This document shows positions 2,934 to 53,651 of a DNA stretch of 64,000 bases, one piece after another (the first letter of the stretch is position 1; every line of letters starts with the position of its first letter). A program made the translations under genes and the position numbers. The DNA comes from Geosiphon pyriformis uo1. Taxonomy: Eukaryota; Fungi; Glomeromycota. The stretch lies in NCBI GenBank assembly GCA_016748015.1, contig JAAOMT010000436.1, positions 1,486,847 to 1,550,846 on the forward strand. Reading direction: 5' to 3'. The notes beneath the pieces were generated by a model that was not told the DNA's origin, ran no database searches, and saw only the letters and a list, made by a program, of their open reading frames with translations.

Positions 2934-3215
2934 CATAACTGAAAAATTGTTTTTTTAATTTTTATTTATTTTATAAAATAATATTAATAAATTTTTACTT
3001 GTTTTTAACATAATAATTAAATCAATTTTAATTTTTCTGTTCTGTATATTTCATCTTTTATAGATTGTATTATATAAAACAAATTTTTTTTTACAAGTTT
3101 TACAAATAAACTCCAACTACTATCTAGTACATAGAACCAAACTAAGTGGAACCAACTAAATGCAGCTTACGCACAGACTACATGTGACCAGCCACTCGAA
3201 CCAGACAAGGCAACA

Positions 3216-20500: not shown

Positions 20501-22219
20501 AGGTTATGTGTTAGTCCAATTAACAATTTTTTGGCTGGTGTTGTTAGAATTTTTTTGAATTGTGATATGTCTCTTGGGAACTTTTCTCATATGGCATTTC
20601 GTTTTTCTGGTGAGACATCAATGTCTTTGGTTTTGGGAGATTATTTGTTTTATGAAGTTTTATGCTCACTCAAAAGATTTGGGGTTGCTTTTGTTGAACA
20701 GCTGTATACCAAAAAAAGTTTGATTTTTGATTGAAAAAGCTTCCGTCATTAAAAGAGGCTTGACCCAAAAGGTCCAGTCCCTTATTGGTTCAATTTGGCA
20801 TGTAACTTCTTGACCCACTTCTCTCTTTATGATAGTCTTTCTGTTGTTGAACTTTGGTCACTGAATGTTGGTAGTTCAGGTAATGTTTTTTAGCTGAAGC
20901 AGTGTTTTTTTATTTCTAATTTAAATGTTATTAAGATTTACATGGACAGATCTTTAAAAAGTTTTAGTATATGGAAGATAGGATGTAGTACAACTGCTTA
21001 CTTCTCAAATGTAGATCTGAGTATTGGCATTAGGATTGATGGGTTGGTTTCTTCCACTTTGGCTGAATTGCAGACAATTGTTTTAGCTTTGAAGTGTGTT
21101 CCTTTTTACAGTTTTGTTGTAGTTTATTTAGACAATTAGGCTGCCTTAGATGCTTGTGCTGTTAAGTTAGTTTTGGCTTCTCTGGACTTCCACAACCATT
21201 GCTGAATGGAATGGCATAGTGTAGTAAATTTAATTAGGGAAAAAAGGCTTAGTGTTTTCTAGCATAAAATTAAAAAACATTCAGGTGTTTTGGATAACAA
21301 GTATGCTAACAAGTTGGCCAATTCAGCTGCAAGTTCAAATATGGTGCTTTCTGTTTTGATTAAAGAAATATTCATTAAGACTGGTAGGGTGGTGGTATCT
21401 GGTAATGTTTAGCATTTTGCTTGGAATGTTTTTAGAACTGTAAATTACACTAGTTGAGAGATTGGACTTGGTTCTGCTGTTATTAACAAAGATATGATTA
21501 GTGATGTGGATTGGATTCATACTGCTTCAGTCTGGTATTTTAACTTGCATATGACAGCTGAATTCACTAACAAGTCTACTGCTGGTCTGCATTCATATTT
21601 TTTGAAAGCTTTGCACCATTGCCTGCCAGTTGCTGTATGGAAATGCTTGTATAATAGAGATTATCTGAGTGTTTTGTGTCTTCATTGTGGTGAAGTGGAA
21701 AGCTTTGATCACTTTTTTGTGTGTGTATTTGATTTTGATGTCCATAAAAATCTGCTTGCTTCTTATCTGGCTAAGTAGCATGTTGTGTCTGGTTTGGGTT
21801 TTTTTTTGTCTCAGATCTTATAGGTGCTCTTTTTGTGTGCTTCTAATGATGTGCTATACACTACTTTAAACAAAGGCTTCTTGTTCAGAGATTGGTATTT
21901 GGAGGCTGTGTCTGTTTTGGGTGATGTTAAATTTGTAAGAAAAGTTGTTATTGACTTTGTTTGAGATTTTGGTGCTGCTCACCATGCTAACATATGGTTA
22001 ATTAGAGCCAAATATAAAGCCTTTATGGAGAAAGGTAGTTTAATTTATTATAATGATTTTGTTTTTCCTGTAATCCATAGTCTGTTGTCTTTGCTTTCAG
22101 CTGGGGTAGTTAGGTTGCTTGGAGTTGCTAAGGCACTAAATATCTGTTTTGGTTTTTATAAACTCTGTTGTTTTTTTTCTGGTTTTGATAGTGTGGTCTC
22201 TATTATAATAGATTCATAG
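17538..22219 (+). pseudogene. LINE C ORF2 (APE-RT-RNase H)
   Basis: IAMCNVR, TETKL, GSDFN, TIDYI, DTDY; QDMQKAYDSV, TFVDNT; YMDRS, AELQT; CLHCGEVESFDHFFVC. Confidence 0.92.
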
Positions 22220-32900: not shown

Positions 32901-35900
32901 AAACCAGCAAAGTCAATTTTTTTTCAAACTGCATTTGCTCAAAAAGTTTCAAATCATACAAAGATAAATAATACAAAATTTTATTAGAAAAGTCACATGG
33001 TAAACTAGTTTTAATTCTAAGATTTTTTCTGATTATAACATTTTACTTGTAACATACATCTAATAAAACAAAACTAAACTGCATCTAATAGCTAACTATA
33101 GACTGAAAAACAGCTGAAACCAAATAAGAAAATTGTTTATTCATAATAATCTTTCTTAATATTACATTAGAAAAGAACCTAATATTTACATAAACCTAAA
33201 CCAAACTGAACTTAGAGAAACTTTCAATAAACAAAAAAATGTCCAAATATCTGTATAATTCATATTTTTTAATAATTAAAATTGGTAAACCATTAATCAA
33301 CAGTGATGCAGTCTTAACACTTTAATTAATAAGAATTATCACTGTTTTATCATTATTAATCAAAATATTATTGATATCAAAAAACTTACTGGCAATATTC
33401 AAAATGTATTGTAAAGAAGCTTGACTACTTCCGACCCAAATTGTATTATCAACAAAGATATTAGCAGTTAAAAAAGAAGTTCTTCCTCTAACAGTCTTAA
33501 TTCTGCCAGTTTTTACCACAAATCTAGTATCAATTCAGTATCTATTCAAGTGTTTATGTCTCTTTACTTTATACAAAAATGGATCATAAAAAATTTTTTA
33601 AAGGAGTGGAGAAAAAATCTTACCCTAATTCAAATTATTATACACTCTATAACCATTTAAGAGTTCAAAATCTGTCATTATTCTGTTGATTTAATTTTCA
33701 TAAATACTACCAAAAAACTTGATAAACTGACTGCATATTTTAATATAATACAAACTAACTCTTAAATGATGCTAGTCTAGTAAATCATAAGCTTTGTGCA
33801 TATCTTGCAATATCAAGCAAAGTTTTTTATTCTTTTTTAGAACATCTTTAACAACTAATCCAATAGCAAAAATTTGGGACTGAGTTGAAGTACCCTTTAA
33901 CATTGAAAAATTATTACCACAAAAAATGTCAAATTTGTTGCATGCTAATAATATCTGATCAGCAAAGATCTTAAATAAAATTTTCCAGGCTGTTTCAATA
34001 AGTACAATAAGTTTAGTATTCATTAAAATACTATTCTATTCATAAAGTTTTGGGATCATCAAAACCCATGCTCTTTTCCAAAAAATTGGAATTATACCCA
34101 AAGTCATACATAAATTCAGCAGTCTCAAAAAACAAACTAACATTTTTTCATCACAATGTTTCCAAAATTCATTAAGTATTTCTGACAAACTAACAGTCTT
34201 ATTATTTGGCAAATTATTAACAACCAAAAACAACTCTTCTATATTAATTTTTTTTATCACACCAAAAAAAGCATTATTATTCACATAATCTAAAGACATA
34301 TATTGATAAAACTAAAGATTAAGTATCTTTGGAAGCACTAACTGCTTTTTTGTCCACTTTTTTATGATTTTATCTACCTTAAGCTTTATTTTATTAGACT
34401 CAATCACTAATTTATCTTTTACTACCAAGTGATTCAAAACAATCTTGTAAAATAAATATTCTAAATGTTTTTTATTATTTACTTTTTATTAGAACATAAA
34501 TTTTCCATATTACAGTCAATTATCTTCTTAATAACTGCATTCTTAGATGTTTTTGACTCATAATATTTAAATTTCTAATATTTTTTCTCTATTATTAACA
34601 AATACTTAACCAAATCTATTAAACTTATATTATTTAGAATTATGTTAGCAACCTTAGACATCTTAACTTTATCAAAAGCCAATCAAATCTTAATAAGATA
34701 GTCAAAATCCAAAAGATTTCCAGAATTTCAGACTCTTACAATCTTTGCAATAAGCAGTTCTAATTTAAAAAATTTTGAAGATTGTTTGTTTCTTGAACAA
34801 TTATATTTGCTATATCAATATTTAGAAAACACTATATTAGTAGTTTATACTATGGCATTTTTTAGCATTATCCATATTATATCCAAATTACTATTGCTTT
34901 TTACATACTCAAACAAGCAACTCAATGAAAGACTGCTTTTTAAAATACAACTATTAGGTTTCATCTGTATTTTTCAACTTGAACTTTTACCAATTCTAAT
35001 TGGCTTGTTTATAAATACTGTTAAGATAAGTATTTAGAAGTCTACTTAAACCAATTATGATTAAAATTGTCTTATGATTCATATTAAAAAACTCTGATAC
35101 ACAATCAACTTTATGATATGTAATTACAGATACCAAGTTTTCATTCACAAAAATAAAATCTAGCATCTTTTTAACTCTTTTAAAATTGCTTCAAATAGAA
35201 GTATTGATCAATAAATGTTTATTAAAGATATTAACCAGACCCAAATTCAAGCAAAACTTGAAACTTGCACTCTTTTTAGATTCATTTTTATTAAAGTTAC
35301 CACTCAAAACTGTGAAAAGACTAGAATTAACTGTTTTAGAAATTATGAAGTTGATATTACAAGCTTGGCCAAAATGCACACCAATAAATGCACCAATATA
35401 TAAATCCAAAATCATAATTAAAAGCTTGCTCTTAAACAGAAGACATATAAAAATTAGCCAATCCAGAATTTTGTCTACCTTTAAAATATGTTGAATCAAA
35501 AAATTGTTCATAATTATGACAATTTCAGCATTGAGAAAACCTACACCCAAATCAGAAATAAAAATTCGAATCTCATCAAACTTATTCATAATTTATGGTC
35601 TAATATTAAACCTTAATTTTGTTTTAATAATAATAGAAATTATATTATCTGAATTTTTATGTCATTAAACAATCTTTTTCTGTTTTGCAAAGACATTAAT
35701 ACTTTGAATATTATATGTAGCAAATTTCCAAACTAGATCTGTTATTAAGAAGAAAAATCTTTTCTACTCAAATCCACATTGTCTATTTTGGCCATTAGAC
35801 CTATAACTGTGTCTAATAAATTGTTCAAAGTTTCTTCTAATTTTGAAACAATTAAAGAACTAATACTTACCATTTTTGTAACAGTCTTATTATTAGTGAC

Positions 35901-37672
35901 TACATCCAAACTCTTACTTATTACTGTATCTGCTCTTTGATTCTGTGATGAAAAAATAACCAACAGCTAACATTTAGAATTAAGCTATAAAACTTTTGGC
36001 TTAAGCACATTTAATTTCTTAATTAGCTTACCAACTCGTTCTATAAGACTGGTAAGACTGTGCTTAAAAGTAGCAAACCTATTATCTATTTCATTAAGCA
36101 CAAGCAAAAGAGACTTCATCTTTGAAGAGGAGCCAAAATTCAATGAATAATTATATAAAAGAATTGAAAAAAAAGATTTATTAATAATTTTAACTTAAAA
36201 AACACCATTAAAAACAACTGAATAAGCAATAAAAGCTGAGTGTTTAGTATAAATAACTGCCAGTCTGCTTTTATTAGTGTTTAAAAAAACTTTTTAAAAA
36301 AAACACCAGAGAATGAATTCTTATTTACAGTACAGTTTAATAACATCTGACTCATATTTCCATATTTTGCATACTTAACATAACTCAAACAAAACCAATA
36401 AAAATTAGTGCCTTTTAAAACTAAAATAATATCTATAGTAGTATTTAAAAACTTAGTAAAGTCCAAACAAACAATTGTATATCTGGTCCAAACATAAGTA
36501 ATTGGATGACAGTCAATAACACAAGTTTTCTCATTTACTAAAATAATGTAATTCCAAATATTATGTGCATTTGTTCTTATCAACAAAATATACAATAGTG
36601 GCTTAGGACTGTTTTTTACATCCCATAATTCTTTTTTTTTATCAGACTTAGCAATATGTACTGCATCTTTCTCAATAAAAATAGATCATTTAGCTATGAC
36701 CAACTCAGCATAATCAATTTGTTCAAATTCAATCATAGCTTTTTGTTAAAATCTTATTAACTATATCTTAATTGACTTAATTAGTCCAAATTCAGAAAAC
36801 ATAGTATACACAATTTTAGCTAATATTCTAATTGGAATTTTTTTCACAACTGCAGTCCAATTTAAATGCTTAGCAAATTTTTTGAGATTAATATTTATCA
36901 TAATTATCGTCTTTTTTATTATATCAGAAGCCTAAGCCAAGTTTGTTTTGAAAGAAAATGTTGCTCTGATAATTTCAGCAAATTTTGAAAAAATAGAAGC
37001 CTCTCTAAAACCATTGATTTTTGAAAATAATTTTCTGACCATCATTAACTTTTCTTAAGAAGACTTTTCAATTATTTTATTTAAACTAATATTAAGAGCA
37101 AATAACTTTTTAACAAGAACATTAACCAAAATTTTCAAAAAAAAAAGAAAAACTAGGGAAGCATCCAATAAGATATTATTATCATCATTATTACTTAAGA
37201 AATTAATCTTTTCTAGCAGTTTTTCTAAAGTTTGTTTGGTTTTAATTCACAAGTTTTTTGAAGTTTGATTGGTATTTTTATTATCAAAAACATTACTTTC
37301 TTCATAATCAATACTGGTTTTTTTAATCAAACACTCTTTTTCTATGTTTATACTCTTAGATTTAGTAGTATTATCAGTATTTAAGCCTTAAAAACAACCA
37401 CTAAACTCTTTTTTAAAAGTGCTCTTTATATCAAAAATATCTTTTAAAACACTGCCTTTTTTTTTTTGATAATACAGGTTTAGTATTCATAAGTAGGCAA
37501 GAATTCTTAACAGACTTTTTCAAAACAGCAATATTAAAGCCAATAGTGATCTCAAAATCAAGCAAAAACAGTTTAAATTTATTGTATTAAATAATAAAAA
37601 ACTTCTTTTAAAAGACTTTTTTTTTAACTTTTTTTGAGAATTTGGGACAAAGGAGAAAAAGAAATTTTTATT
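29951..37672 (-). mobile_element. Full-length LINE E, decayed, with a different ORF1 type, interrupted by a solo LTR
   Basis: Poly(T) and 3' UTR at ~29948-30088. ORF2 remnants (QDMHKAYD, IFVDNT) and ORF1 remnants (e.g. 36281..36595). Candidate TSD TTTAATAGTTT at 29940-29950 and 37673-37683. Tail-to-tail with LINE D. Confidence 0.88.
31808..32788. mobile_element. Solo LTR (981 bp) inserted in LINE E
   Basis: TGTTACC...GATAACA termini. Flanks GTAA/GCAA form a 4-bp TSD with one transition. LINE E sequence resumes in register after it. It retains several CpGs. Confidence 0.85.
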
Positions 37673-38719: not shown

Positions 38720-39510
38720 AATTAATTAACTTTAATAGAGATATCAAAAGTTGTGTTTGTTATGCGGCAAGTAATTATCAGTTGACCTATATAAAAAATT
38801 TATAAGTGATCGCCAGAATTTAAATTTAAATTCAGAGAATTGAAGAATTTTAATCATAATTACGTTAATTTTTATATGGTATTTTTTAATAAACTGGATT
38901 CTTCCTAAATAATAACTATATAAATTAGTTAGAGTTATGTTGCGGGTCTAAAATATTTGGCCAATAAGACCCTAAATCTGTAGATTATAAAAGCTCTATA
39001 AAAAAGAGAGTATTAATAAATCCTATAAATGGGATTAGATAAAATGCATAATATTAAGAGTATTCGATAGAAGCACATTGTAAAGGTTTTAAAACTTATC
39101 AAAGCATTTTATTGATTGCATCTTATTGCGACATTGGTAGAAATTTCTTGTATCTACCGCCTCTGAGACATTTACCCAATTTTTCCCATATTTTCCAAAT
39201 GCTTCTTTTAAATTTTTTATCTCTACTGAGTTCCATTTCCCCTTATTATAATAGTTTTGAACTTTTGGTGAGTAACGACAATGAACTTTTATCTGCCGTA
39301 AGGATCTTCCCGGAATTAATAGCTGTATTTGTTCCCAATTCTCACCATGATTTTGAAAAGCTTTAGCTAATTCATTAAATTCTTCCCCAGTCCATCGGCC
39401 CCTTTTGATCCCAGGCGCCAAGAATTCTTCATAGTGTCTGCGAATCACGCTAGGCGGTCTTTGAAGAATACGACTTATATTTGCCCATTTTTTACCATGA
39501 CTCTGCACCA
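38715..39510 (-). repeat. Left arm of an inverted duplication (partner 53236-54032)
   Basis: Near-identical reverse complement covering the MYB 3' half plus ~370 bp of downstream flank, with a few substitutions. Confidence 0.92.
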
Positions 39511-40159
39511 AGCCTAAAAGTTTTTCATCTTCTTGCTTGTTCCATGGGCCGCGTTTTGGTTGTGCTAAAACATTATTATATCGTCGACATAAATCTTCAT
39601 TACTTCTTCCAGGGAAATGGCCAGTTGATAAAATAGTTTTCCATTCAACTTTTCCATTATTTAAATGTTTTTTGGCAGCTAAGCATAGCTCTTTATCTTC
39701 TTCAGGTGTCCACTTTTTTAATTTTCGTACAAATTTTCGATTAATAATTGCTCCATTAGCTGTTAAGTGATACCATTACACTGAAGGGAATTTGCTGTTC
39801 TTGATGAAAAATATTTTTGTGAAATTAATTCCCATTTTGAACCATATGCTTGTTGTGCTTCAAAAAGGACTCTCATTTCTTCAAAGCTCCATTTTCGACA
39901 ATGTTTCTGGCAGAAAATTTTTTTATCACTTAATATAGCGCTTTTATTATTTCCTAGCATTTGACTTATTGACGATAAACTATTCCAGGGAAGTGTCAGC
40001 TATTAGTTAGAATCAAGTCAAACATTTCAAGATGGGTTAAAAGTTTTCTCCCAAAACGGGTTTTCAGGAAGATTAGTAGCGGCTTACATTTAATTTCCTT
40101 AAAGTTAACCATATGTAAATAGTGAAACATGTTATATTTTTAGTTTGTGATTTTAACAT
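39089..40159 (-). pseudogene. Five-repeat MYB gene, copy 1 (chimeric, frameshifted)
   Basis: Exon 1 40159-40088, intron 40087-40000 (GTAAGC...AATAG), exon 2 from 39999. A 1-nt deletion near 39777 (TGTAATGG versus TGTAAATGG in copy 3) breaks repeat 1; the frame is open after it. Confidence 0.85.
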
Positions 40160-40397
40160 GATATCATGAGGAAGTAAGAAAAAATGTTTTTCCAATCTCT
40201 ATTTTATATTCGTAGCGATATGGCCGATCTTGCTTAATCAATCATCATCAGATAAATTTGAGATTTTTCACGTGGGGAGTTAGCAATTTAGCAATATTTT
40301 TTAGATATTTAAAAGGTTTCAAATGATATTATAAAATGTTCTTCTATCATTGGAGTTAATTTCAAAAGTTAGACTATTATCTTTAGGTGATATTCTA

Positions 40398-40399
<2 letters not shown>

Positions 40400-40455
<56 letters not shown>

Positions 40456-40467
40456 GTTGTTGTTGTT
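40400..40467. repeat. (TTA)n microsatellite grading into (TTG)n
   Basis: Directly visible ~240 bp upstream of MYB copy 1. Confidence 0.95.
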
Positions 40468-40667
40468 TTTATTAAAGACTTATCCAATTTTAACCTATTT
40501 AAAGGTTAAAATCCCTAAAATAAGTATTAAAATACTCATATATTTCACATTATTATAATAAATAAATTGTTTAAATTTTTATATATAATTTTCAAAACCA
40601 TTTATTATTTTGTAATAAAAGAGTTTTATCATGGTATTTTTAAACACATTAAAACTACAATGATTAA

Positions 40668-41110
40668 TTGTATAAAAAAATTGATATTTACTTTTATTAT
40701 TAATAAATGTGTAATAATATATATGTTTTTAAATATATATATATATATATTAAAAATTTTATATGCAAATAATAAATAAATAAAATGAATTAAAGGTTTT
40801 TTCATATAGTTTCAAAGTTCTTAAATTAAAATAATTAATTCTTGTTCTCATCTTAATTTTTTGTTTCTTGGTATATTTTAAAAAATAAAAAATAAAATAG
40901 CTTGAATTACTAATTTTAAAGTAAGAGCTCAATTGACAACAAAAATAAATACAGCTCTCTAAACTCAACAATTCAGATACTAAATTTAAAAAAAAATTCA
41001 AAATTCATGACTGTAAAAGTTTGTACCAAAAAAAAAAACAACATGAAATTTTTTTTTAAAATACCAAAAAATTTTTCCCCAAAATTTGGTCATAGAAATA
41101 TCTTTGTTTA
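40668..41110. repeat. Non-coding block duplicated in inverted orientation at 48641-49086
   Basis: Near-identical reverse complement; the same spurious ORF translation appears at both sites. It lies upstream of MYB copies 1 and 4. Confidence 0.92.
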
Positions 41111-41124
41111 AGTTTATTCAAATA

Positions 41125-41870
41125 GATTTCTTAAGCAAGTTTTTATTATTGCTTTAGTCTTAATTCATGCTAATCTGACCAAGTCATATACTGTCAAAAC
41201 TAATAATTCAAATTTTGTTTTGAAAGTATTTTTATTACAATTCGAATCTAATTACCTATACTATATTGATTTTTATTTATGAAAGTTTTCTGTCCAAGAA
41301 ATTAATTATAAAATTTATGACAAAGAATTATTACTGCTTTTGAACAATAACATTACTATTTTTTGCATTTATAAAAATTTTCAATATTTTATGACAACTA
41401 CAACTTTTAACTAGTATAAAGCTTAGTGATTAATTTTTATAGCTGATTTTAATTTTGTAACATTTTATTATTCCAGTTTGCTACAGAATAAATTCTGAAT
41501 ATTACGAAAAAGCATTAGTCTTAAACCTAAAGAGAGAAATGATACTTATAACACAACAATAAACTATCTTACTTAAGTCTAAACATTTTAAGATTGCTGC
41601 CATCTTTTTTTTATGCTTAAACCAAAATCTATTAGCTATGAAATTTAAATATATAGATTATTTCCTGCTTTATAACAATTTCATTTATGTTACAAAAGCT
41701 CCGAAATGTTTTCAAGTTCAAAAAGAAAGCCATGATAACCCACTTGCTGGTTATTTTGAAATTAGTAAGACCTTCAAACTTATTCTTAGAAATTACTAGC
41801 AACCACAGCAAGAAAAGTTTGTTAAAGATTAAATTAAATCCTGCAATATTTGTATATCTAACATGATAGA
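41125..41870 (+). pseudogene. Decayed Ty3/Gypsy (Tf2-like) pol fragment: RNase H and integrase zinc-binding region
   Basis: Reads LIHANLTKSYTVKTNNSNF, EINYKIYDKELL, and ESHDNPLAGYFEISKTFKLILRNY...FVKD*IKSCNIC (HHCC-type). Confidence 0.8.
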
Positions 41871-42698
41871 CCAACTTTTCTTAGGAAGCGTCCAAAAGTT
41901 TTATTTAGATAAATCAAATCAAAAGAAATGAATCGGATTTAGATGCTTAAACACTACATTACATAATTTTGAGTTTTTAGACTATTTTTATTATTATTCA
42001 ATATTTGTTTATACTATGAAGTATTTAAAATAAATATTCGTCCCTTTGTTTTCAAAAGAAATTAATAGTAGTAAAAACATAAACGAATTTCACTTATAAT
42101 TCATTAATATTGACATAACAAAAGAAATATTGGGTTATGATACTCAAAATAATTTTTTAGACAAGCGGGTATTTTTTTGAATATATCAAATACTTTACAA
42201 AACATTAATTCATTTTAAATCAGATTTAATCGGACTAGATATAAAACAATTGAAAAAATATCCTGTTTTAGGGAATTAGTACAGGATGCTAAGTATTAGG
42301 GCTCTGGAAATGAATTTCCATACGAGTATAAAAATTCCCAGGAAATAATAAATTTAGTTTATGAGGCCTTTTTTAAAAAATCAGATCAAATATTTAATCC
42401 ACACGACTAATAATTGATCATATGAACAGTTTTCTTTAATAATTTCCTTTTATTTATATTATTTTGACTAGTTGCTTTCGACCACTAAATTGTATAAAGT
42501 GGTTAAAATTATTTATAATATCAACTCTTTGATCCTATTCTGAATTTATAATTTTTATGGTGCTCTCAATCGCAATAAATATATTTGTTAACAAAAGCAA
42601 ATATAAAAAAGTAAAGCGTTGTATTCTTTGGAAATTTCATAATAAAATAACTTAATGAATTATTTTCCAAATAAAGTGGTTGGAGTTTTGTTTTAAGT

Positions 42699-43598
42699 TT
42701 AAATTAGCCGGTCAAGATGTTTTTTATAACATTGTCGTGGACTTCTCGTATTTACCGCTTTTGAAATTTCTACCCAATTTTCCCCATATTTTCCAGATGC
42801 TTCTTTTAAATTTTTTATCTCTACTGAGTTCCATTTCCCCTTATTATAATAGTTTTGAACTTTTGGTGAGTAACGACAATGAACTTTTATCTGCCGTAAG
42901 GATCTTCCCGGAATTAATAGCTGTATTTGTTCCCAATTCTCACCATGATTTTGAAAAGCTTTAGCTAATTCATTAATTTCTTCCCCAGTCCATCGGCCCC
43001 TTTTGATCCCAAGCGCCAAGAATTCTTCATAGTGTCTGCAAATCACACTAGGCGGTCTTTGAAGAATACGACTTATATTTGCCCATTTTTTACCATGACT
43101 CTGCACCAAGCCTAAAAGTTTTTCATCTTCTTGCTTGTTCCATGGGCCGCGTTTTGGTTGTGCTAAAACATTATTATATCGTCGACATAAATCTTCATTA
43201 CTTCTTCCAGGGAAATGGCCAGTGGATAAAATACCTTTCCAATCAATTTTATTGTTTTTTTTATAGCTTTTAGCAGCTGAGTACAATTCTTTATCTTCTT
43301 CTGGTTTCCACTTCTTTGCGTTTAGGTTCACATTATTATTAATTTCTAATAGACTAGCTGTTAAACGTTGCCATTTACACTTAAGAGCCTCTACTGTTCT
43401 TAATGGAAAGTGTTTTTGCAAAATTATTTCCCATTTTGAACCATACTCTTCGTGCTCCTCAAATAGGGCTTTAATTTCTTCAAGGCTCCACTTCTGAGAA
43501 TATTGTGGGCAAGAAATATTTTTATCACTTAATAAAGGATTTTTTGTATTTCTAAGTGTTCGATTCATTAATGATAGATTATTCCTGGGAAGTGCTAA
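42699..43598 (-). CDS. Five-repeat MYB-domain protein, copy 2 (exon 2 open; exon 1 predicted in the N gap)
   Basis: Five Trp-anchored repeats (KWSLEE, KWKPEED, GPWNKQED, GRWTGEE, GKWNSVE). Acceptor TATCAG lies 30 nt upstream of the MNRTL ATG; the intron matches that of copy 5. Confidence 0.9.
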   Translation of the reverse strand, partial: LALPRNNLSLMNRTLRNTKNPLLSDKNISCPQYSQKWSLEEIKALFEEHEEYGSKWEIILQKHFPLRTVEALKCKWQRLTASLLEINNNVNLNAKKWKPEEDKELYSAAKSYKKNNKIDWKGILSTGHFPGRSNEDLCRRYNNVLAQPKRGPWNKQEDEKLLGLVQSHGKKWANISRILQRPPSVICRHYEEFLALGIKRGRWTGEEINELAKAFQNHGENWEQIQLLIPGRSLRQIKVHCRYSPKVQNYYNKGKWNSVEIKNLKEASGKYGENWVEISKAVNTRSPRQCYKKHLDRLI

Positions 43599-45055
43599 CT
43601 GATAGTAAAAATTAAATTAGTTGATGAAAAATTTTCTCTTCTGAAAACGGAATTTGTGATAGCCTACCTNNNNNNNNNNNNNNNNNNNNNNNNNNNNNNN
43701 NNNNNNNNNNNNNNNNNNNNNNNNNNNNNNNNNNNNNNNNNNNNNNNNNNNNNNNNNNNNNNNNNNNNNNNNNNNNNNNNNNNNNNNNNNNNNNNNNNNN
43801 NNNNNNNNNNNNNNNNNNNNNNNNNNNNNNNNNNNNNNNNNNNNNNNNNNNNNNNNNNNNNNNNNNNNNNNNNNNNNNNNNNNNNNNNNNNNNNNNNNNN
43901 NNNNNNNNNNNNNNNNNNNNNNNNNNNNNNNNNNNNNNNNNNNNNNNNNNNNNNNNNNNNNNNNNNNNNNNNNNNNNNNNNNNNNNNNNNNNNNNNNNNN
44001 NNNNNNNNNNNNNNNNNNNNNNNNNNNNNNNNNNNNNNNNNNNNNNNNNNNNNNNNNNNNNNNNNNNNNNNNNNNNNNNNNNNNNNNNNNNNNNNNNNNN
44101 NNNNNNNNNNNNNNNNNNNNNNNNNNNNNNNNNNNNNNNNNNNNNNNNNNNNNNNNNNNNNCTGCCAGTTTTTTCTCTTCTGGTAGTGACTTAATTTAAA
44201 GAGGCTTCATGATTAATGCATATAAGTATAATTTAATTGAGTAAAGTACACGCCAAATCATAGTAATATATGTAGATAAATAATAAGTACTTCATCTAGT
44301 TTATAAATTTATGCTAAAAATTACCCAGCTTTTAAGAGTCTTGGTGGAAAACTTTTTTGGATTGCATAATTTTTAAGCACAAATCCAGGAGATTTTTTTA
44401 ATCAAGATACCTTAATACTAATACTATAATATATATATAAACTAATCTGTAGTATTGCCTCGTTCTGCATTTATATAAGCTTGAAATATGGGCAAATGTA
44501 CTATGAATATTAGTAAGTATCTCCTCTGGAAGATTTCAGAGCATAAAATTAGAGAAAAAGCAAAAGGAATTTTGGCAAAAAAAAACTGTCTCTCGAAGTC
44601 TTTATTGAAATATTAAAAAACCAGCCCAAATATTCTCAATAGGGACTATGTGATGGCCACAATAGAATAAGACACAGAAATCTTTACTTGGAGGTCATCA
44701 CGCACATTATAAGTGGAAGTAGCATTTTTGGGCAGAATGGCAATTCTGCCAAGCCTTTAGAGCTTTTCTCAGACAACTTATTTGCCAACTTCGAACTCTG
44801 AATGCATTTCTTTGAGCGCTTTCGGCTGCTATAACGAAATGATTTCCGTACACGATTTTGCCGATCTGCCGACATTTACCCAGTAGGTTCATTAAAAAAA
44901 ATTGTTAACTAAAAAAGTGTTCAAAATGGTTTTTTAATATTAATGACAATTGAACCAATCATCTCTAAATAGTAACGTGACCTAATATATAAGCTATAAA
45001 TAAAGATTATATTACCAATTTTCTTACTTTCTCATGTTGATTATGTTATAAAATT

Positions 45056-46030
45056 ATGCTAAAATCGCAAGCCACAAATACAATATGTTTCACTCTTTAC
45101 ATATGGTCAACTTTATGGAGACTAAAAGTAAGTAGGCCCCACAAATTCGATAAAAATCTTGTGTAAAAGAAAAACTATACTAATTTTAGATCCCCTAATT
45201 CATTTTGCTATCAGCTAGCAATTCCCTCGAGCAGCCCATCATCAATGAATCGAATCCTAGGAAATAATAAAAGCGCTATATTAAGTGATAAAAAAATTTC
45301 CTGCCAGAAACATTGTCGAAAATGGAGCTTTGAAGAAATGAGAGTCCTTTTTGAAGCACAACAAGCATATGGTTCGAAATGGGAATTAATTTCACAAAAA
45401 TATTTTTCATCAAGAACAGCAAATTCCCTTCGGTGTAAATGGTATCACTTAACAGCTAATGGAGCAATTATTAATCGAAAATTTGTCCGAAAATTAAAAA
45501 AGTGGACACCTGAAGAAGATAAAGAGCTATGCTTAGCTGCCAAAAAACATTTAAATAATGGAAAAGTTGAATGGAAAACTATTTTATCAAGTGGACATTT
45601 TCCTGGAAGAAGTAATGGAGATTTATGTGTTCGGTATAACAGTGTTTTAGTGTACCCAAAACGCGGCCCATGGACCAAGCAAGAAGATGAAAAACTTTTA
45701 AGCTTAGTGCAGAGTCATGGAAAAAAATGGGTAAAAATAAGTCATATTCTTCAAAGACCATCTGCTGCGATCCGCAGATATTATGAAGAATACTTGGCGC
45801 CTGGAATTAAAAGGGGCCGATTGAAAGATGAAGATTTTAATAAATTGGCTAAAGCCTTGTCAACTCATGGTGAGAATTGAGCACAAATACCAGCTATTAA
45901 TTCTAGGAAGAACCTTAAAACAGATAAAATACCTTTGTCGTCACTCACCAAAATTTAAAATATAGTAGAGAATAGAAATATAAGCTTTTAAAAGATATGT
46001 GTAAAACCACAGAGGCGGTAAATAGTATTT
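45056..46030 (+). pseudogene. MYB gene copy 3 (truncated in repeat 4)
   Basis: Exon 1 45056-45127, intron 45128-45214 (GTAAGT...TATCAG), exon 2 open to TGA 45878-45880 (TGG in paralogues), then a +1 frameshift and partly deleted repeat 5. Confidence 0.85.
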
Positions 46031-47199
46031 TAAAAAAATTTAATAGATGAAAAGGTTAAAATGTTTAAGTGCAAAAGTTTATAACAGAAATTATCTCCTA
46101 GGCTCTTAGCTAGTTAAATATAACTCTTTACTTTTATGAGGGAAATAATTTATTTTTCCTTTTTCTAGATTTTCCAATAAAGTTATTAAAACTTATTTGA
46201 GTTAATGTATTAAAGATTTTATATTTATATAAAAATATTTTCAAGAAAAATACTTTTAGCTCAATTTGGGATCATATTTCTCTGACCTTTTTTGAAAAAC
46301 TGAAATTTTTTGGTTGAATTTTCATTTGGGTTTCTGATACCTTTTCATTGTCATCTGGGTAGCCCTTAGCCACCGGCCTGGTGCGCAGGCCATCTGAGGA
46401 ATGAATTACTAATCCACTATCTCTGGGAGCATCTAAGCTGATTCTTGTTGAAATCAGAGTTAATGCCACAAAGTAAAGGAAAGGTGAATTATGCCTATGA
46501 GCTCAAATTTAAAAGGAAGTTTCTTCATTTTTCGCACATAAATCTCTACTCAAAGAAGATTTAAAATGCCCAAGAAAAAATTTCATCCGAAAAATTTTGT
46601 AAATATTTGAAGTAAAAGCAAGTCTCTTTTATATAAAATTTGTATTGAAAATTCTAAAAGACTTCAGATATAAATTATGGGTTTTTAAAAGTTTCCAAGC
46701 TATAAATGTAACTTTTTTGTACTCAATTCATATGAAAGTCCTTTAAAAGTATTTATTTTTTACATCAAATGCTTTATAAATTTGCAAATTGCTATTCATT
46801 AAATCAATTTAAGGCTAAGAAAAGAAAAGTTCCACTAGTGAAAGCTTACCTTTATTATTATTATTATTATCATATTTTTCCAAGTGTCAAAAAATGTATA
46901 AAGATGAGTGTCAGTGAATTTTTAGGGATTCAGAGTACTTCTTTTGACACATTTTCTATTGTGGATAAATAATTTTAAGACTTTAAAATATAAATCATCA
47001 AAGTATGAATTTTTATTAAAAATGAAACCGCAAATTAATAGTTGAAAAAAAATGAAAGAAAGATCTATATTATAGTTTTGTCATATAACTTGGCTAAATA
47101 TTTTCTTGAAATTCTTTTGTCTTGAAATTTTTGAAAAATATAAATTTCTTTCATTTCACTTCACTTCACCTTATTTAATCCAAATAAATTGTTCCAATC

Positions 47200-48382
47200 T
47201 TAAAAATAAATTCCTAGATGTTTGGTACGAGTTTAATACCTTTTTCTTTTTTAAATAGATTATCAATATTTTCGACTTCAAACAGTTTAAGAATCCTTCC
47301 AATAGCAACTGTTTTAAATTTAGGTATTAAAGTTTTTTCAAGCTAAATATTTTCAATTATCAATAAATCAAATCTACCTGATCATACACGTGAATAAATT
47401 ATTCCTAAACTGTATATATGATCCATAAAGACCAACAATCTTATGCAAAATTTGTTACAAAAACTAATTCCATGTACCCGTTCTTTATCATAGCTAACAT
47501 TAAATGATAAAACTTCTTCATCAGCTTGAAATGTAAAATATATTGGCCAAATATGCCATATGTCACAGATCTGAAATTGGGACATGTTAAAGGTCAAATA
47601 ACTAATTTTATCACTAAAAAACGAAGATATAGTCTTAAAATGAGATTCCAATTGCTTTTTCTGGTTTGGTGAGTTCACTTCAAAGATTCCCAAGTCTTTG
47701 ATTAAAGTAAACTTCAAATGGTTCACATCCCATTCCACCTACTGCCCCGGAGCGTTGAAACTTTGTTGAAACAGCATAACTCTCAGAATTATCACCACTC
47801 GTTTCGATTTCTGGAACTTGATCATCTGAATCGATCAAAGTCCACTCTAGTTTTTTATCTCTTTTCAACTTGACAGTATTGTTGGTGAAGTTTGAAGCAA
47901 ATATTTATATAAAATTCCGTCAATTTTTTTTGTCCAGAAAACCATCCAAAATTTTAATATATTATCATTTCAATTTGAGTATGTAAAGATAATTCTAGGT
48001 TCTGGCAATAAAAGAATCAAGCAATTAAACATAAGCTAAAACGTTGAAATATGTTTGTAAATTACCTTGAATGTAGCATCAATCCCTTTGTAGTGCCATA
48101 AGAAAAATAATGAAATACAACCCAACACTATAAGCCAATTTAAGGATTTTTCTGTTTGCTAATCACCAAGAAAAGCTTATTGACAGAGGTAGAGGGTCGA
48201 GAATTCTCATTATAGAAAATGTCAAAATTTCTCAACAATCCAAAAGACATCCTGTATATGTACCAAACTCTTGTCAATGATATCGCTGGTATTCTAATCA
48301 GATCCTGACTTACTGATTCCTGACCTCGAGATTTTTCATTCAGATCATTCCCATCATCTACATTGGAGTGTGATAGGCTCAT
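47200..48382 (-). pseudogene. Disrupted gene of unknown family
   Basis: Chain of same-strand ORF fragments (48140..48382, 47680..47868, 47382..47738), a plausible GT..AG intron near 48064-48001, CpG retained, several stops and frameshifts. Confidence 0.4.
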
Positions 48383-49297
48383 GAAAATTATAAAGAATGC
48401 ACGGTTAATATTATAGATTAAATTTAGTTATTAAACTGAACTAAATGTTTGCTTTTGTCTGACACTCGCATAAAATATTTTATATTAAACAGCTTTCGTT
48501 CCAATACAAAAATTATGGCACTCCACAATTAACGTGTACACTCTAAAAGAAAGAAGTATGCAGAGAAAGAGATATTCTTGCCAGAGGCCGTATAGTGGAG
48601 TTCTAATCATCTAAAAAACTTAAAACCAAGATGTGAGGGATAAACAAAGATATTTCTATGACCAAATTTTGGGGAAAAATTTTTTGGTATTTTAAAAAAA
48701 AAATTTCAAGTTGTCTTTTTTTTTTGGTACAAACTTTTTCAGTCATAAATTTTGAATTTTTTTTTTAAATTTAGTATCTGAATTGTTGAGTTTAGAGAGC
48801 TGTATTTATTTTTGTTGTCAATTGAGCTCTTACTTTAAAATTAGTAATTCAAGCTATTTTATTTTTTATTTTTTAAAATATACCAAGAAACAAAAAATTA
48901 AGATGAGAACAAGAATTAATTATTTTAATTTAAGAACTTTGAAACTATATGAAAAAACCTTTAATTCATTTTATTTATTTATTATTTGCATATAAAATTT
49001 TTAATATATATATATATATGTTTTTAAACATATATATTATTACACATTTATTAATAATAAAAGTAAATATCAATTTTTTTATACAANNNNNNNNNNNNNN
49101 NNNNNNNNNNNNNNNNNNNNNNNNNNNNNNNNNNNNNNNNNNNNNNNNNNNNNNNNNNNNNNNNNNNNNNNNNNNNNNNNNNNNNNNNNNNNNNNNNNNN
49201 NNNNNNNNNNNNNNNNNNNNNNNNNNNNNNNNNNNNNNNNNNNNNNNNNNNNNNNNNNNNNNNNNNNNNNNNNNNNNNNNNNNNNNNNNNNNNNNNN

Positions 49298-49941
49298 TAA
49301 AAAAGTGGACACCTGAAGAAGATAAAGAGCTATGCTTAGCTGCCAAAAAACATTTAAATAATGGAAAAGTTGAATGGAAAACTATTTTATCAAGTGGACA
49401 TTTTCCTGGAAGAAGTAATGGAGATTTATGTGTTCGGTATAACAGTGTTTTAGTGTACCCAAAACGCGGCCCATGGACCAAGCAAGAAGATGAAAAACTT
49501 TTAAGCTTAGTGCAGAGTCATGGAAAAAAATGGGTAAAAATAAGTCATATTCTTCAAAGACCATCTGCTGCGATCCGCAGATATTATGAAGAATACTTGG
49601 CGCCTGGGATCAAAAGGGGTCGATGGACCGAGGAAGAATTTAATGAATTAGCTAAAGCTTTTAAAAATTATGGTGAGAATTGGGAACAAATACAGCTATT
49701 AATTCCGGGAAGATCCTTACGGCAGATAAAAGTTCATTGTCGTTACTCACCAAAAGTTCAAAACTATTATAATAAGGGGAAATGGAACTCAGTAGAGATA
49801 AAAAATTTAAAAGAAGCATTTGGAAAATATGGGAAAAATTGGGTAAAAGTCTCAGAGGCGGTAGATACAAGAGGTTTAGAACAATGTCGCAGGAAGATGC
49901 TATCGTTGAGGGAAAGTCTCGTCAATAGGATTTGCATTTAA
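49298..49941 (+). CDS. MYB protein copy 4 (repeats 2-5; 5' part in N gap)
   Basis: Open frame KKWTPEED...TRGLEQCRRKMLSLRESLVNRICI*. Matches copy 3 through repeat 3, then matches copies 1, 2 and 5. Confidence 0.85.
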
Positions 49942-50532
49942 ACATCACTTTCAATTTTTGACACCTTACTTTATTTTATGATCTGTGAATTTAATTTAAT
50001 CATCCTTAAATTTAAGTTTTTCTTATGTCTTAATTGTTTTTTAGTCTATTTAGATTTAAGAAGAATTTTGTTCCACGCATAGAAAATTTAGCTTTCTATA
50101 ATTTAGAATATAATTTAGATAATAAGCTATGAATTATTCAGATTTAAAATAGTTCACTTAAACAAAACTACTCAAATCTTATTGAGATGAATAATTTACA
50201 TATTCAAAGCTTTTTAAAATTAAGATTTTTCCAAGAGTTTTAAGTAGGAATAGTTTGATGAATTTCATCAATATCATTGCTTTAGATTTTTGAAAAAGCT
50301 TTCATATATTTAATATTTTTAGAAATAATTTGTAAGGGTTGAATAAAATTATTTACTCGTTACTGAAACTGGTTAACTAAACTTAGTTACCAATTTTACA
50401 CCCCTAATTTATATTAAAAAGCTTTATATTTTAGAGCTTCTAGTTAGTAATAGGATATGAAAACATCAAGGTAGAGATAAACGATATTAATTTTGAATTT
50501 TTTTTATTTTCGGAAAAATATATACAAACTAG

Positions 50533-51237
50533 ATATTAAATTCTAATTACAAATTTGTATAAAAATTCTAATTTAATAAATAAGATAATATCTATTAAAA
50601 TAGACCATAACACTTAATTTTTGTTATCGTCTTTTTTAAAAAAATTTGTAATTAGAATTAAGAGAGATCTAAAATATTAAGTATTTAGAAAAATTATTAA
50701 AAGGATGAATTTTACAATCATTTTAATTAAAACTTATACCTCTTTTTAAATAGGTATTTATGGTAGATTAGTTTCGATTATTATCAAGTAAAAAANNNNN
50801 NNNNNNNNNNNNNNNNNNNNNNNNNNNNNNNNNNNNNNNNNNNNNNNNNNNNNNNNNNNNNNNNNNNNNNNNNNNNNNNNNNNNNNNNNNNNNNNNNNNN
50901 NNNNNNNNNNNNNNNNNNNNNNNNNNNNNNNNNNNNNNNNNNNNNNNNNNNNNNNNNNNNNNNNNNNNNNNNNNATATTAAATTCTAATTACAAATTTGT
51001 ATAAAAATTCTAATTTAATAAATAAGATAATATCTATTAAAATAGACCATAACACTTAATTTTTGTTATCGTCTTTTTTAAAAAAATTTGTAATTAGAAT
51101 TAAGAGAGATCTAAAATATTAAGTATTTAGAAAAATTATTAAAAGGATGAATTTTACAATCATTTTAATTAAAACTTATACCTCTTTTTAAATAGGTATT
51201 TATGGTAGATTAGTTTCGATTATTATCAAGTAAAAAA
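50533..51237. other. ~263-bp direct duplication on both sides of an N gap (probable unmerged contig overlap)
   Basis: 50533-50795 is repeated at 50975-51237, exactly flanking the gap. Confidence 0.8.
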
Positions 51238-51811
51238 AAAATTTCATTTAAATTCGGTATTCTTAGTCTGTCCTTGAAAATTTCTATTTAAAATTCAAAT
51301 AAAATCTTATAGATATTTTCACAATTATATATTTATAATAAAAACCTTTTTTTTTAATAATGTCAATTGCACCATTTTAATTAAATTAAATTAAATTAAA
51401 AAGTACCAGTGATTAAAGTTTAAAAAATTTCGAGTTATAATTATTTCACAAAAAAACCTTGTTTAAAAATTCTTAAAGAAACACTTACTAATTATTAGAA
51501 TTAAATAGTTTTAATAAAAGTTTGAAGAATTATAATTTATTTAAAAAACTTGAGCTTTATTTAAATTTTTCATTTTAGAGTAACTCTCAACTTGTCGAGA
51601 ATCGCATTTAAATTCACTACTTTCTAAATATGATATAATGTAGAAATGCGTCACATAAAATTAGTACGATTCCTTAAAATCATAAAGAATTTTAAAAATT
51701 AAAATAATGATAACGACCTTAAAATTGCACCTGCGCGATTATTATAATAGTAAAAGACATTCATCTTTGTTTAATTAAAGAGTCACTTGAAAATTCGAAT
51801 TGTATACATAA

Positions 51812-52690
51812 ATGGTTCGCCAAAAATATTTTACTAAAAACGGATGTTATATGGTAAAAATTCTCAAGAAAATTGTTTTGAAAGATTAGAATTAATAAAA
51901 AATATTAATCATTTAAAATGAAGTCATAATGCGAAATTTATTGTTGATAAACATTCTAAACGTTGAATTCTCTGGAAATAAAAAAATGCAGCAATAAGAA
52001 AGATATCAAAACATTTGCTTACTGCCAAAACTTTCATCTCAAATCCAAATTCTCATGTTCACTAATACTTTGATAAATATATTTATTAAATCTTGTATAA
52101 TGCGTAAGAATCCAATGATTAATAAAGTAAACCGAATCAAAAGGTTAAATTGGCCTGAAACCTACAAGCATTGGGACCAAAGAGGAGTAGAGACATGTTC
52201 TTTGGACAGACGAATCGCCTATAAGTAGTCAATAAATTAAAGATTTGTCTCTAATTGAATAGCAGTAAAGACTGCCTCTTTCTATTCTTGGCTTTCGGCT
52301 CTGGTAAATCCAATTTTTAACTTCCCTCCACATATTTTATATTGAACTAAAATCTGACGGTTGTGGAGGCAATTCCAAAGTCACAATTCCATGATTATCT
52401 TCGAGTTCTTTCACGAGCTTGTACTTGTGAATTGGAGGGTTATATTTTAGAAATATTGCTTTTTTAGCGGTTATAATCATTAGATAAACTATATCCAATA
52501 TAAGGCTTCTATATGCTTCACCAGTCATATGTGAGGGTACGAAACAATTTATTCAAATCTTGTCTGCTAATACATCCCCAATGACATGATAGATTTGCGT
52601 CCACTTTTAATGGTTATTCGTGTATGATCAGAGTTGTAAAGCTCATTTTATGACACCATGTACAAATTTTCATACGATGCTAAAATATGT
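51812..52690. pseudogene. Tc1-family transposase remnant with internal inversion
   Basis: Plus strand: KSCIMRKNPMINKVNRIKRLNW...RHVLWTDESP (to ~52220). Minus strand 52690-52250: TIKSGRKSIMS..GCIS, NPPIHK, LELPPQPSDFSSI*NMWREVK. Confidence 0.82.
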
Positions 52691-53000
52691 TAAAATTATA
52701 AAAAGAAAGGGTTATGTGATCCATTGGTAGATGTTTGTTTTCAATAATAAAATTATGGTGAAAATTTCACTTTTATTACATGTATTATATTAAATGTATT
52801 ATCAATGGCATGTATTAAGTCTGTTCAAATCAGTTGATTTATTAATTTTATTACCTGTGAAAATTATCAATCGCATCTAAACAATGGAGTGATAAAAAGA
52901 TGATCAGCCTCATGGGTGGATATAAATAGAAACATGTAGTAGAAAAAAAATATTATTTCTAATTTTCTTACTTTCCCATGTTATTTATCTCATTAAAATC

Positions 53001-53651
53001 ATGTTAAAATCGCAAACCAAAAATACAATATGTTTTACTCTTTACATATGGTTAAATTTAAGGAAATTAAAAGTAGGTAGGCTATCAAAAATTCCGTTTT
53101 CAGAAGAAAAAATTTTTCATCAACTAATTTATTTTTACTATCAGTCAGCGCTTCCCAGGAATAATCTATCATTAATGAATCGAACACTTAGAAATACAAA
53201 AAATCCTTTATTAAGNNNNNNNNNNNNNNNNNNNNTGGTGCAGAGTCATGGTAAAAAATGGGCAAATATAAGTCGTATTCTTCAAAGACCGCCTAGCGTG
53301 ATTCGCAGACACTATGAAGAATTCTTGGCGCCTGGGATCAAAAGGGGCCGATGGACTGGGGAAGAAATTAATGAATTAGCTAAAGCTTTTCAAAATCATG
53401 GTGAGAATTGGGAACAAATACAGCTATTAATTCCGGGAAGATCCTTACGGCAGATAAAAGTTCATTGTCGTTACTCACCAAAAGTTCAAAACTATTATAA
53501 TAAGGGGAAATGGAACTCAGTAGAGATAAAAAATTTAAAAGAAGCATTTGGAAAATATGGGAAAAATTGGGTAAATGTCTCAGAGGCGGTAGATACAAGA
53601 AATTTCTACCAATGTCGCGAAAAGATGCAATCAATAAAATGCTTTGAATAA
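53001..53651 (+). CDS. MYB protein copy 5 (repeats 1-2 hidden in a 20-N gap)
   Basis: Exon 1 53001-53072, intron 53073-53144 (GTAGGT...AACTAAT...TATCAG), exon 2 SALPRNNLSLMNRTL.... By comparison with copy 2 the gap stands for ~420 bp. Confidence 0.82.
   Translation: MLKSQTKNTICFTLYIWLNLRKLKVGRLSKIPFSEEKIFHQLIYFYYQSALPRNNLSLMNRTLRNTKNPLLXXXXXXXXVQSHGKKWANISRILQRPPSVIRRHYEEFLAPGIKRGRWTGEEINELAKAFQNHGENWEQIQLLIPGRSLRQIKVHCRYSPKVQNYYNKGKWNSVEIKNLKEAFGKYGKNWVNVSEAVDTRNFYQCREKMQSIKCFE

Follow-up and report, generated by a model that had tools for sequence, protein, structure and literature searches.

A cluster of Myb-repeat genes with a conserved leader exon in Geosiphon pyriformis, from a family with diversifying contact residues

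Organization of the Myb gene cluster

The window, a stretch of 64,000 nt of Geosiphon pyriformis DNA, contains five places occupied by Myb-repeat genes, but not five intact genes (Table 1). An earlier note on this DNA had described five genes with five repeats each, which does not hold, since copy 1 is frameshifted, copy 3 has an early stop, and gaps interrupt copies 2, 4, and 5. Only copy 2 presents five repeats in one open exon free of gaps, and the gap in which its donor and first exon were placed has a size compatible with this location (427 nt in the nearest paralogue). The gap at copy 4 is represented by 211 N, where the corresponding stretch of copy 1 has 947 nt, and the 20 N inside copy 5 stand at a place where the paralogue L005 has 419 nt, so that ~420 nt are missing from the scaffold.

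Exon 2 of copy 1 is a mosaic, with a 5′ part of the copy-3 type and a middle of the copy-2 type. The first 311 nt of copy 4 are identical to copy 3 at 310 positions, and the two sides of copy 5 differ, the left being of the copy-2 type whereas the right and the adjoining flank match copy 1 at 99% identity along 797 nt. Blocks of 100% identity adjoin blocks of 72%, four assembly gaps fall within 14.5 kb, a segment 96–98% similar is present ~30 kb downstream, and across the family about half of the copies are frameshifted or truncated. These features would all be in keeping with a small number of real genes, multiplied through segmental duplication and chimeras of short reads, in which exposed helix residues simply drift.

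The arrangement of a GATC element and a TATA box is common to 27–28 of the 33 paralogue upstream regions. The pattern is not rare genome-wide (96 matches versus 64 in the control), and its evidential value thus comes only from its fixed position. The common element suggests that the paralogues are co-regulated.

Table 1. Positions of the Myb gene features in the window
Feature	Coordinates	Strand	Description
Copy 1 promoter	40203..40229	-	Conserved GATC-containing element ~20 nt upstream of TATA box
Copy 1 exon 1	40088..40159	-	24 codons; basic leader without acidic residues
Copy 1 intron	40000..40087	-	88 nt, GT-AG, phase 0; branch-point-like motif inside
Copy 1 exon 2	39089..39999	-	Five Myb repeats; 1-nt frameshift at ~39776 in helix 3 of repeat 1
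Copy 2 exon 2	42699..43598	-	Five repeats, open, no gap
Copy 2 intron, 3′ 71 nt	43599..43669	-	Acceptor as in other copies; donor and exon 1 placed in gap 43670-44161
Copy 3 TATA-like box	44995..45002	+	
Copy 3 exon 1	45056..45127	+	72 nt
Copy 3 intron	45128..45214	+	87 nt; in-frame stop within
Copy 3 exon 2	45215..45880	+	Repeats 1-3 and part of repeat 4; premature TGA 45878-45880
Copy 4	49298..49941	+	Repeats 2-5, open; 5′ end missing from assembly (gap 49087-49297)
Copy 5 promoter element and TATA box	52902..52926	+	
Copy 5 exon 1	53001..53072	+	72 nt
Copy 5 intron	53073..53144	+	72 nt; unspliced reading open, unlike nearly all other paralogues
Copy 5 exon 2, start	53145..53215	+	Copy-2-type linker, up to 20-N gap
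3′ piece assigned to copy 5	53236..53651	+	Repeats 3-5; putative join with 53001-53215

A conserved leader exon

Copies 1, 3, and 5 each contain the 72-nt exon 1 that had been proposed, which phase-0 GT-AG introns join in frame to exon 2, with the junction coordinates and spliced peptides as previously given, and copy 2 retains the same acceptor. In the window's clade exon 1 is, as claimed, conserved above the intron (80% versus 60%). The intron of copy 3 has an additional AG at intron position 62, upstream of the acceptor, the use of which would break the frame.

Exon 1 recurs in ~30 paralogues, and the frame is kept over many intron lengths. A frame-blind rule taking the first AG joins the two exons in frame and without a stop in 20 of 25 paralogues, and the family acceptor does so in 24 of 28, while 23 of the paralogue introns have lengths that are not multiples of three and one alone is open when unspliced. 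The exon is under purifying selection (pN/pS 0.24–0.51), is conserved to the same degree as the Myb scaffold, and is found almost exclusively on these Myb genes. Together, the splice frame kept across paralogues and the pN/pS values indicate that exon 1 is a genuine coding leader. Its description as hidden applies to the window copies, whose own models miss it, but not to the family, as seven public models (P0008–P0012, P0015, and P0020) contain it. The second in-frame Met, which had been put forward as the start of an untargeted isoform, is not conserved across the family, and the two-isoform idea is weak because this Met is missing in many paralogues.

Myb repeats and selection at the contact residues

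Myb proteins are usually regarded as nuclear factors with conserved contact residues. The arrays studied here match Pfam Myb_DNA-binding with 98–134 bits (cutoff 24.4), and the predicted fold of the family member L031 has five HTH repeats (pLDDT 86); a single-sequence fold of P0015 reached a pLDDT of 35. The nearest folds of the family model in Foldseek are SNAPc4, c-Myb, and Reb1, the best match being SNAPc4 (7xur_A, E 2e-7; sequence E 3e-15), and the ESM Atlas contains generic Myb clusters only for the repeat array. The Pfam scan of exon 2 gave no PPR family and no C2H2 match, and the leader search no KRAB match. A product with five repeats has ~35–37 kDa and a pI of ~10, and terminates within ~20 residues after repeat 5, so that a C-terminal activation or regulatory region is absent.

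The contact positions were mapped onto c-Myb (1h88, match 4e-20), the base-contact residues of which are named in PMC3203581. The c-Myb residues K128, E132, N136, N179, K182, and N183 are not conserved, with about seven different residues found per contact position, and all 14 five-repeat copies differ in their contact-residue fingerprint. A helix 3 devoid of the c-Myb motifs and the missing C-terminal domain agree with the earlier view that these are not ordinary Myb transcription factors.

The family shares with c-Myb/R1R2R3 and R2R3 MYB proteins (PF00249, PF13921) the tandem Trp-rich HTH repeats and the same helix-3 register, but has five repeats, an N-terminal leader exon, no activation domain, and contact residues that are positively selected instead of conserved. 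A long Myb array is also found in SNAPc4/SNAP190 and plant 4R-MYB. The SNAPc4 subunit is large, conserved, and single-copy, with 4.5 conserved repeats and with SNAPc1/3-binding regions at its N-terminus, whereas the Geosiphon proteins have 300 residues, are multi-copy (>45) and variable, and resemble it with 25% identity in the repeats only. The search for a separate, true SNAPc4 gene identified none.

At the 25 contact sites omega is 2.33, versus 0.43 at the 237 other sites (p 8e-22). The comparison of M8 with M8a gave a 2dL of 147, with 10% of sites at omega 3.3, and 13 of the 20 selected sites belong to the contact class (p 9e-11). Selection at the contact sites holds in three subclades, was replicated in two clades on other contigs, and holds in four of the five repeats analysed with their own trees; in the window's own clade, once the synonymous rate at contact sites was left free, omega is 1.1 and not significant. 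This is the strongest signal of the analysis, and it was absent from the earlier note.

The replication on other contigs weakens the explanation by neutral debris and assembly artefact, which we consider very improbable. At sites defined beforehand omega lies well above 1, and the other sites are under purifying selection, which also speaks against it, as do the identities of 50–70% between paralogue proteins, a divergence far beyond assembly error, and the conservation of promoter, exon 1, and splice frame alike. The copies presumably arise and decay by birth and death.

Family distribution and ancestry

In Geosiphon the family comprises >45 loci on six contigs, in clusters that lie among LINE-like and Tc5/DDE remnants, and in our sequence searches both this burst and exon 1 were seen in Geosiphon alone. 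In a FastTree protein tree with moderate supports (0.8–0.87), the exon-1 clade is nested among Geosiphon genes that lack introns and have presequence-like starts, beside Glomeromycotina proteins. Leader-plus-Myb proteins of Glomeromycotina, Mucoromycotina, and Basidiobolus (such as CAG8563569.1, CAI2170016.1, and CAB4496099.1, some of them auto-named Bas1p or myb-like protein L) carry five repeats in collinear order after a leader that is basic and poor in acidic residues but lacks the exon-1 motif. The named members of the collinear set are from Ambispora, Diversispora, Acaulospora, Funneliformis, Paraglomus, Entrophospora, Rhizophagus, Cetraspora, and Mycotypha, and shorter matches with presequence-like leaders from Mucor, Circinella, Jimgerdemannia, and Basidiobolus. 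Presequence-like starts, called by a simple ad hoc composition rule, were found in 14 of 18 collinear relatives, selected by alignment span, versus 5 of 37 canonical Mybs (p 5e-6), a comparison in which related proteins are not independent.

The contact sites are nearly invariant in the orthologue sets of Rhizophagus and Funneliformis. The literature searched contained no description of the leader-plus-Myb family and no known mitochondrial Myb-repeat family. On sequence grounds, we place the five window places within a Geosiphon-specific burst of an older, Myb-repeat-only family of early-diverging fungi.

Destination of the proteins

The first 24 residues in the exon-1 models have no D/E and 2–5 K/R, are net positive, and are Ser/Thr-rich. 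In every model checked the leader stands strictly at the N-terminus and has no acidic residue over a length of 28–48 residues, with the first acid at 29–49; in copies 1 and 3 it is at position 49, as had been reported, and the nine basic residues ascribed to the copy 5 leader are likewise present. The proposal of organelle targeting stands in part: the basic leader is real and presequence-like leaders are usual in the relatives, but exon 1 would be atypical as a presequence. It is Arg-poor, with a hydrophobic moment of 0.29–0.45 versus 0.53 in relatives, its best 11-residue Kyte-Doolittle mean is 1.2–2.4 versus 0.66 in other fungal leaders, the R-2/R-3 cleavage motif is absent from six exon-1 models, and its sequence is more conserved than usual for presequences. 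A likeness to the leader of Ambispora P0084 was rejected (E 1.5). Judging from sequence and ancestry, the leader is most likely a mitochondrial targeting signal, and its level of conservation suggests a protein-interaction motif equally well.

The main alternative is a nuclear repressor array, possible though in our view doubtful, whose repeats would track transposons or fast-changing nuclear DNA while exon 1 recruits a co-repressor, or the proteins simply block sites. In KRAB-ZFP genes and PRDM9, a small and conserved first coding exon precedes a single exon with the array, the genes are clustered and subject to birth and death, and the contact residues are under selection. The likeness of the Geosiphon genes in first exon, array exon, clustering, and selected contacts favours the nuclear role, although their repeats are Myb and not C2H2, KRAB and SET are absent, and the exon-1 peptide is basic and acid-free. 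Such a role would also suit the sequence conservation of exon 1, atypical as a presequence, and the LINE-like and Tc5/DDE surroundings; all solved relatives are nuclear, and small basic proteins are able to enter nuclei. Against it, presequence-like starts are much commoner in the closest relatives, inside and outside Geosiphon, than in nuclear Mybs, the leader with its long acid-free stretch is always at the N-terminus, and exon 1 is almost confined to these Myb genes and matched no known repression motif among those tested. The leader has no counterpart in the ESM Atlas.

Geosiphon is, to our knowledge, the only fungus in which Nostoc is known to live within the cells, and an altered ancestral presequence might direct the protein to the bladder compartment with Nostoc, or to endobacteria, for binding of symbiont DNA in a TAL-effector-like manner. 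We regard this as improbable, even if the expansion of the family and the new exon 1 were seen only in Geosiphon, the exon-1 core reaches 2.4, positive selection is compatible with conflict between partners, and the promoter element suggests co-regulation. The hydrophobic stretch has only ~11 residues and is weak (1.2) in the largest subclade, and no route into cyanobacterial cells is known. Moreover, K/R follow the core and a small-residue cleavage region is absent, which leaves little in favour of the secreted or effector-like leader suggested earlier.

Discussion

We tentatively favour the view that the array consists of diversifying readers with mitochondrial-type Myb proteins as ancestors, and that it works like RFL-PPR genes. 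Behind a TATA promoter, each gene has a short leader exon followed by a single exon that encodes up to five HTH repeats, and, extrapolating from c-Myb, each repeat would read a few bases through helix-3 positions +3, +6, +7, +10, and +11. As the contact positions are positively selected and blocks are apparently exchanged between copies (misassembly being possible), each gene would have its own recognition code. In mitochondria, the protein would bind a specific DNA or RNA site and, having no catalytic or activation domain, would presumably act by occupancy, blocking transcription, replication, or processing. The fast change would then be a pursuit of mitochondrial sequences that change fast themselves, or of selfish elements, by analogy with RFL-PPR in plants. 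Against this mitochondrial reading, a small mitochondrial genome may not supply targets for dozens of specificities. Mitoviruses were considered as a driver and are unsupported, the passages found in PMC7482067 naming only a tymo-like virus for Geosiphon.

RFL-PPR genes are clustered, with an N-terminal targeting leader, diversifying selection at the residues touching nucleic acid, many pseudogenes, and conserved singlet relatives (PMC7380019). The Geosiphon copies share the clustering, the N-terminal leader, diversifying selection at contact positions, numerous pseudogenes, and conserved singlet relatives, but the fold is Myb HTH and not PPR, the organism is a fungus and not a plant, and targeting and target are both inferred. 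They may represent a fungal counterpart of the restorer-of-fertility PPR clusters, with a different fold and a five-residue-per-repeat code. More broadly, early-diverging fungi perhaps possess an undescribed class of mitochondria-targeted Myb-repeat readers of nucleic acid, of which one Geosiphon branch might have become a re-programmable array in an arms race with mitochondrial or endosymbiont sequences.

For annotation, several public models of these genes miss the first exon. Besides zinc fingers and PPRs, a Myb array with diversifying contacts is a third scaffold for evolvable sequence readers, and a comparison of its natural variants would aid in deriving a recognition code for Myb repeats. 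If nuclear, the array would parallel, in a fungus, the control of transposons by KRAB-ZFPs. If the leaders target mitochondria, a novel class of organellar regulators would extend across Mucoromycota, and the array would point to conflict between nucleus and mitochondria, or between host and symbiont, in a coenocytic fungus.

Exon 1, splicing and promoter

Ahead of ~30 paralogues in the Geosiphon pyriformis genome we found exon 1, a basic, acid-free leader of three subtypes (72 nt in copies 1, 3 and 5 of the window), which a phase-0 GT-AG intron joins to the Myb-repeat exon (exon 2). With the first AG ≥45 nt past the donor used as acceptor, whatever the frame, 20/25 genes gave an in-frame, stop-free join, and a family acceptor motif, picked by eye, gave one in 24/28. 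In the latter set (n = 28) the introns range from 54 to 89 nt, 23 lengths are not multiples of three, and one intron alone is open when unspliced. The pN/pS of exon 1 is 0.24-0.51, its identity lies above that of the intron, and its conservation equals that of the Myb scaffold. These comparisons mark exon 1 as truly coding. It is not as fully hidden as the earlier note described, since seven public models already contain it. The second in-frame Met, on which a two-isoform idea had been based, is absent in many copies.

In 27-28 of the 33 copies the upstream region holds a TATA box and, ~20 nt above it, an element that contains GATC. The distance between the two is fixed at 19-23 nt whichever of the three subtypes is taken, and one of these has a second, near-inverted GATC within the spacer. 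The element possibly reflects shared regulation or self-regulation. Beyond Myb genes, exon 1 has one match (91%), on contig C656, which gave no Myb match in the search with copy 3; it is either an orphan leader or the leader of another gene.

Copies in the window

For the five Myb-repeat gene places of the window (copies 1-5), the exon 1, introns and peptides proposed for copies 1, 3 and 5 hold, whereas five genes with five repeats each do not, the gene count being insecure. Copy 2 is the sole five-repeat exon that is both open and gap-free, and a 492-N gap is large enough for its exon 1 (the matching stretch in the paralogue L005 is of 427 nt). The reading frame is shifted by one base near 39776 in copy 1 and cut short by a stop at 45878 in copy 3, and copy 4 starts after a 211-N gap that corresponds to 947 nt of copy 1. 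Copy 5 combines a copy-2-type start with a copy-1-type end, and is only putatively one continuous gene because 20 N stand between them where L005 has 419 nt. The copies are patchworks: in the exon-2 alignment copy 1 shares 97-100% identity with copy 3 between columns ~75 and ~375, and 96-100% with copy 2 from there to column ~825, which would fit either recent gene conversion or short-read chimeras.

The neighbourhood of copies 3/4/5 is repeated at 95-98% identity ~30 kb downstream, either through recent duplication of the segment or as a haplotype left uncollapsed. A 263-nt exact repeat around the gap at 50796-50974 is most likely an unmerged contig overlap, and two ORF fragments between copies 3 and 4 are possibly exons of an unrelated gene.

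Features of the window and of the Geosiphon genome
Feature	Position	Strand	Remarks
GATC element + TATA	window 40203-40229 and 52902-52926		shared with upstream regions of most paralogues
Broken Tc5/pogo-type transposase	window 10719-11540	-	HTH_Tnp_Tc5 and DDE_1 matches
Decayed LINE-like element	window ~3200-9700	-	weak endonuclease and RNase H matches at 7170-7754 and 3663-4232
Decayed LINE-like element	window ~17000-21800	+	similar ORF fragments
Decayed LINE-like element	window ~32700-36700	-	similar ORF fragments
Decayed LINE-like element	window ~59400-61600		similar ORF fragments
ORF fragments	window 47385-47738 and 48143-48427	-	no Pfam match
263-nt exact repeat	window 50533-50795 and 50975-51237		flanks gap
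Repeated neighbourhood	C669:1561110-1566901		L005, L007; contig of the window
Exon-1 match	C656:152467-152523	-
L043	C788:321900-324100		paralogue

The family in the genome

The 128-Mb assembly was searched with copy 3, exons of spliced models being searched separately. Copy 3 gave 64 matches at >45 loci, with clusters on contigs C669, C520, C507, C788, C310 and C596. About half of the copies are truncated or broken, and the family undergoes birth and death. Full-length products are of ~35-37 kDa, with a pI of ~10 and a C-terminus soon after repeat 5, and the structure model of a member has five helix-turn-helix repeats, the nearest folds being SNAPc4, c-Myb and Reb1. The Geosiphon family falls within the Myb superfamily, but the defining features of SNAPc4 and of c-Myb-like factors are not found in it. 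No description of the family was found in the literature searched, a search outside which the Geosiphon genome paper lay.

In L043 repeat 2 is cleanly absent and repeat 1 is joined to repeat 3, which reads as a whole-repeat deletion. More distant Myb-array genes are L044 (C787), which starts like a presequence and has ~150 residues duplicated internally, and L045 (C714), L049 and L050 (both C575), whose repeats are similar to repeat 1 of the family. Two public models are likely annotation fusions: P0014 (G9A89_003956) joins two Myb genes, and P0025 (G9A89_023478) a lipase_3 gene to an exon-1-bearing Myb gene.

Selection at contact residues

The base contacts of c-Myb (K128, E132, N136, N179, K182, N183, N186, S187; PMC3203581) map to +3, +6, +7, +10 and +11 past the Arg opening helix 3. 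Among 28 paralogues, the 25 contact sites have a mean of 2.36 bits and 7 residues, versus 0.9 bits and 3 residues elsewhere. Omega is 2.33 at contact sites versus 0.43 elsewhere (p = 8e-22 for omega = 1) in a class test that is not blind, the class having been fixed after variability was seen by eye, and here as in all the omega tests recombination can inflate the values and branch lengths are scaled from the nucleotide tree. When the synonymous rate is left free, contact-site omega comes to 2.27 (p = 7e-6). Taken one by one, the three subclades give 2.1, 3.5 and 2.8, and 4/5 repeats, each with its own tree, give values >2; freeing the synonymous rate abolishes the result in the clade to which the window's copies belong. 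The site model, which is blind, favours M8 over M8a by 147 (2dL), with 10% of sites at omega 3.3. A posterior >0.9 was reached at 20 sites, of which 13 belong to the contact class (p = 9e-11) and 16 to helix 3. Fingerprints are distinct in 14/14 five-repeat copies, a set without L008, in whose frame most of repeat 1 is missing. Beside this selection, neutral debris is an improbable reading of the family, for all its broken copies.

Ancestry and proposed mode of action

Because word searches gave no close relative beyond Geosiphon, an exhaustive search was run. Its best collinear matches are in Ambispora, Diversispora, Acaulospora, Funneliformis, Paraglomus, Entrophospora, Rhizophagus, Cetraspora and Mycotypha, with shorter ones in Mucor, Circinella, Jimgerdemannia and Basidiobolus. 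Presequence-like leaders occur in these relatives: a simple, ad hoc presequence rule is passed by 14 of 18 (Met-starting matches spanning at least 240 profile positions, not independent of each other) versus 5 of 37 canonical-helix Mybs (p = 5e-6), three of these five resembling Mucorales-type proteins. The exon-1 clade is nested (supports 0.8-0.87) among intronless Geosiphon genes (L031, L032, L035-L037, L046, L048) whose N-terminal leaders are similar, and the contact sites are nearly invariant in the Rhizophagus and Funneliformis orthologue sets. Together, the relatives' leaders, the nesting and the invariant sites indicate that the leader-plus-Myb design is old. Only in Geosiphon were the burst of copies, the motif of exon 1 and the selection on contact sites seen.

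The exon-1 leader is strictly N-terminal, Ser/Thr-rich and Arg-poor, with 0 acidic and 2-5 basic residues per 24, a hydrophobic core (Kyte-Doolittle mean 1.2-2.4, versus 0.66 in other fungal leaders) and a modest hydrophobic moment; no typical presequence cleavage motif was found in the leaders examined. Its ancestry favours mitochondria, and its oddness would leave room for a new role, of which retargeting to a symbiont, or secretion, is an unlikely one. The observations of the earlier note are borne out in part, and its interpretation, an organelle-targeted or secreted nucleic-acid-binding family, is partly supported.

The family belongs neither to the PPR nor to the KRAB-ZFP proteins, and a nuclear role like that of the latter is the main rival reading, plausible but somewhat less likely. 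In clusters of restorer-of-fertility-like PPR (RFL-PPR) genes, selection acts on RNA-contact positions 5 and 35, more strongly in clustered genes (PMC7380019), and the Geosiphon family matches this pattern in its clustering and its selection at contact positions. By this analogy we tentatively regard the family as a mitochondrial reader array that may work like the RFL-PPR clusters. Helix 3 of the Myb repeats would bind nucleic acid, the proteins would be imported into mitochondria and act by occupying a site, and conflict with mitochondrial sequences would drive their fast change.
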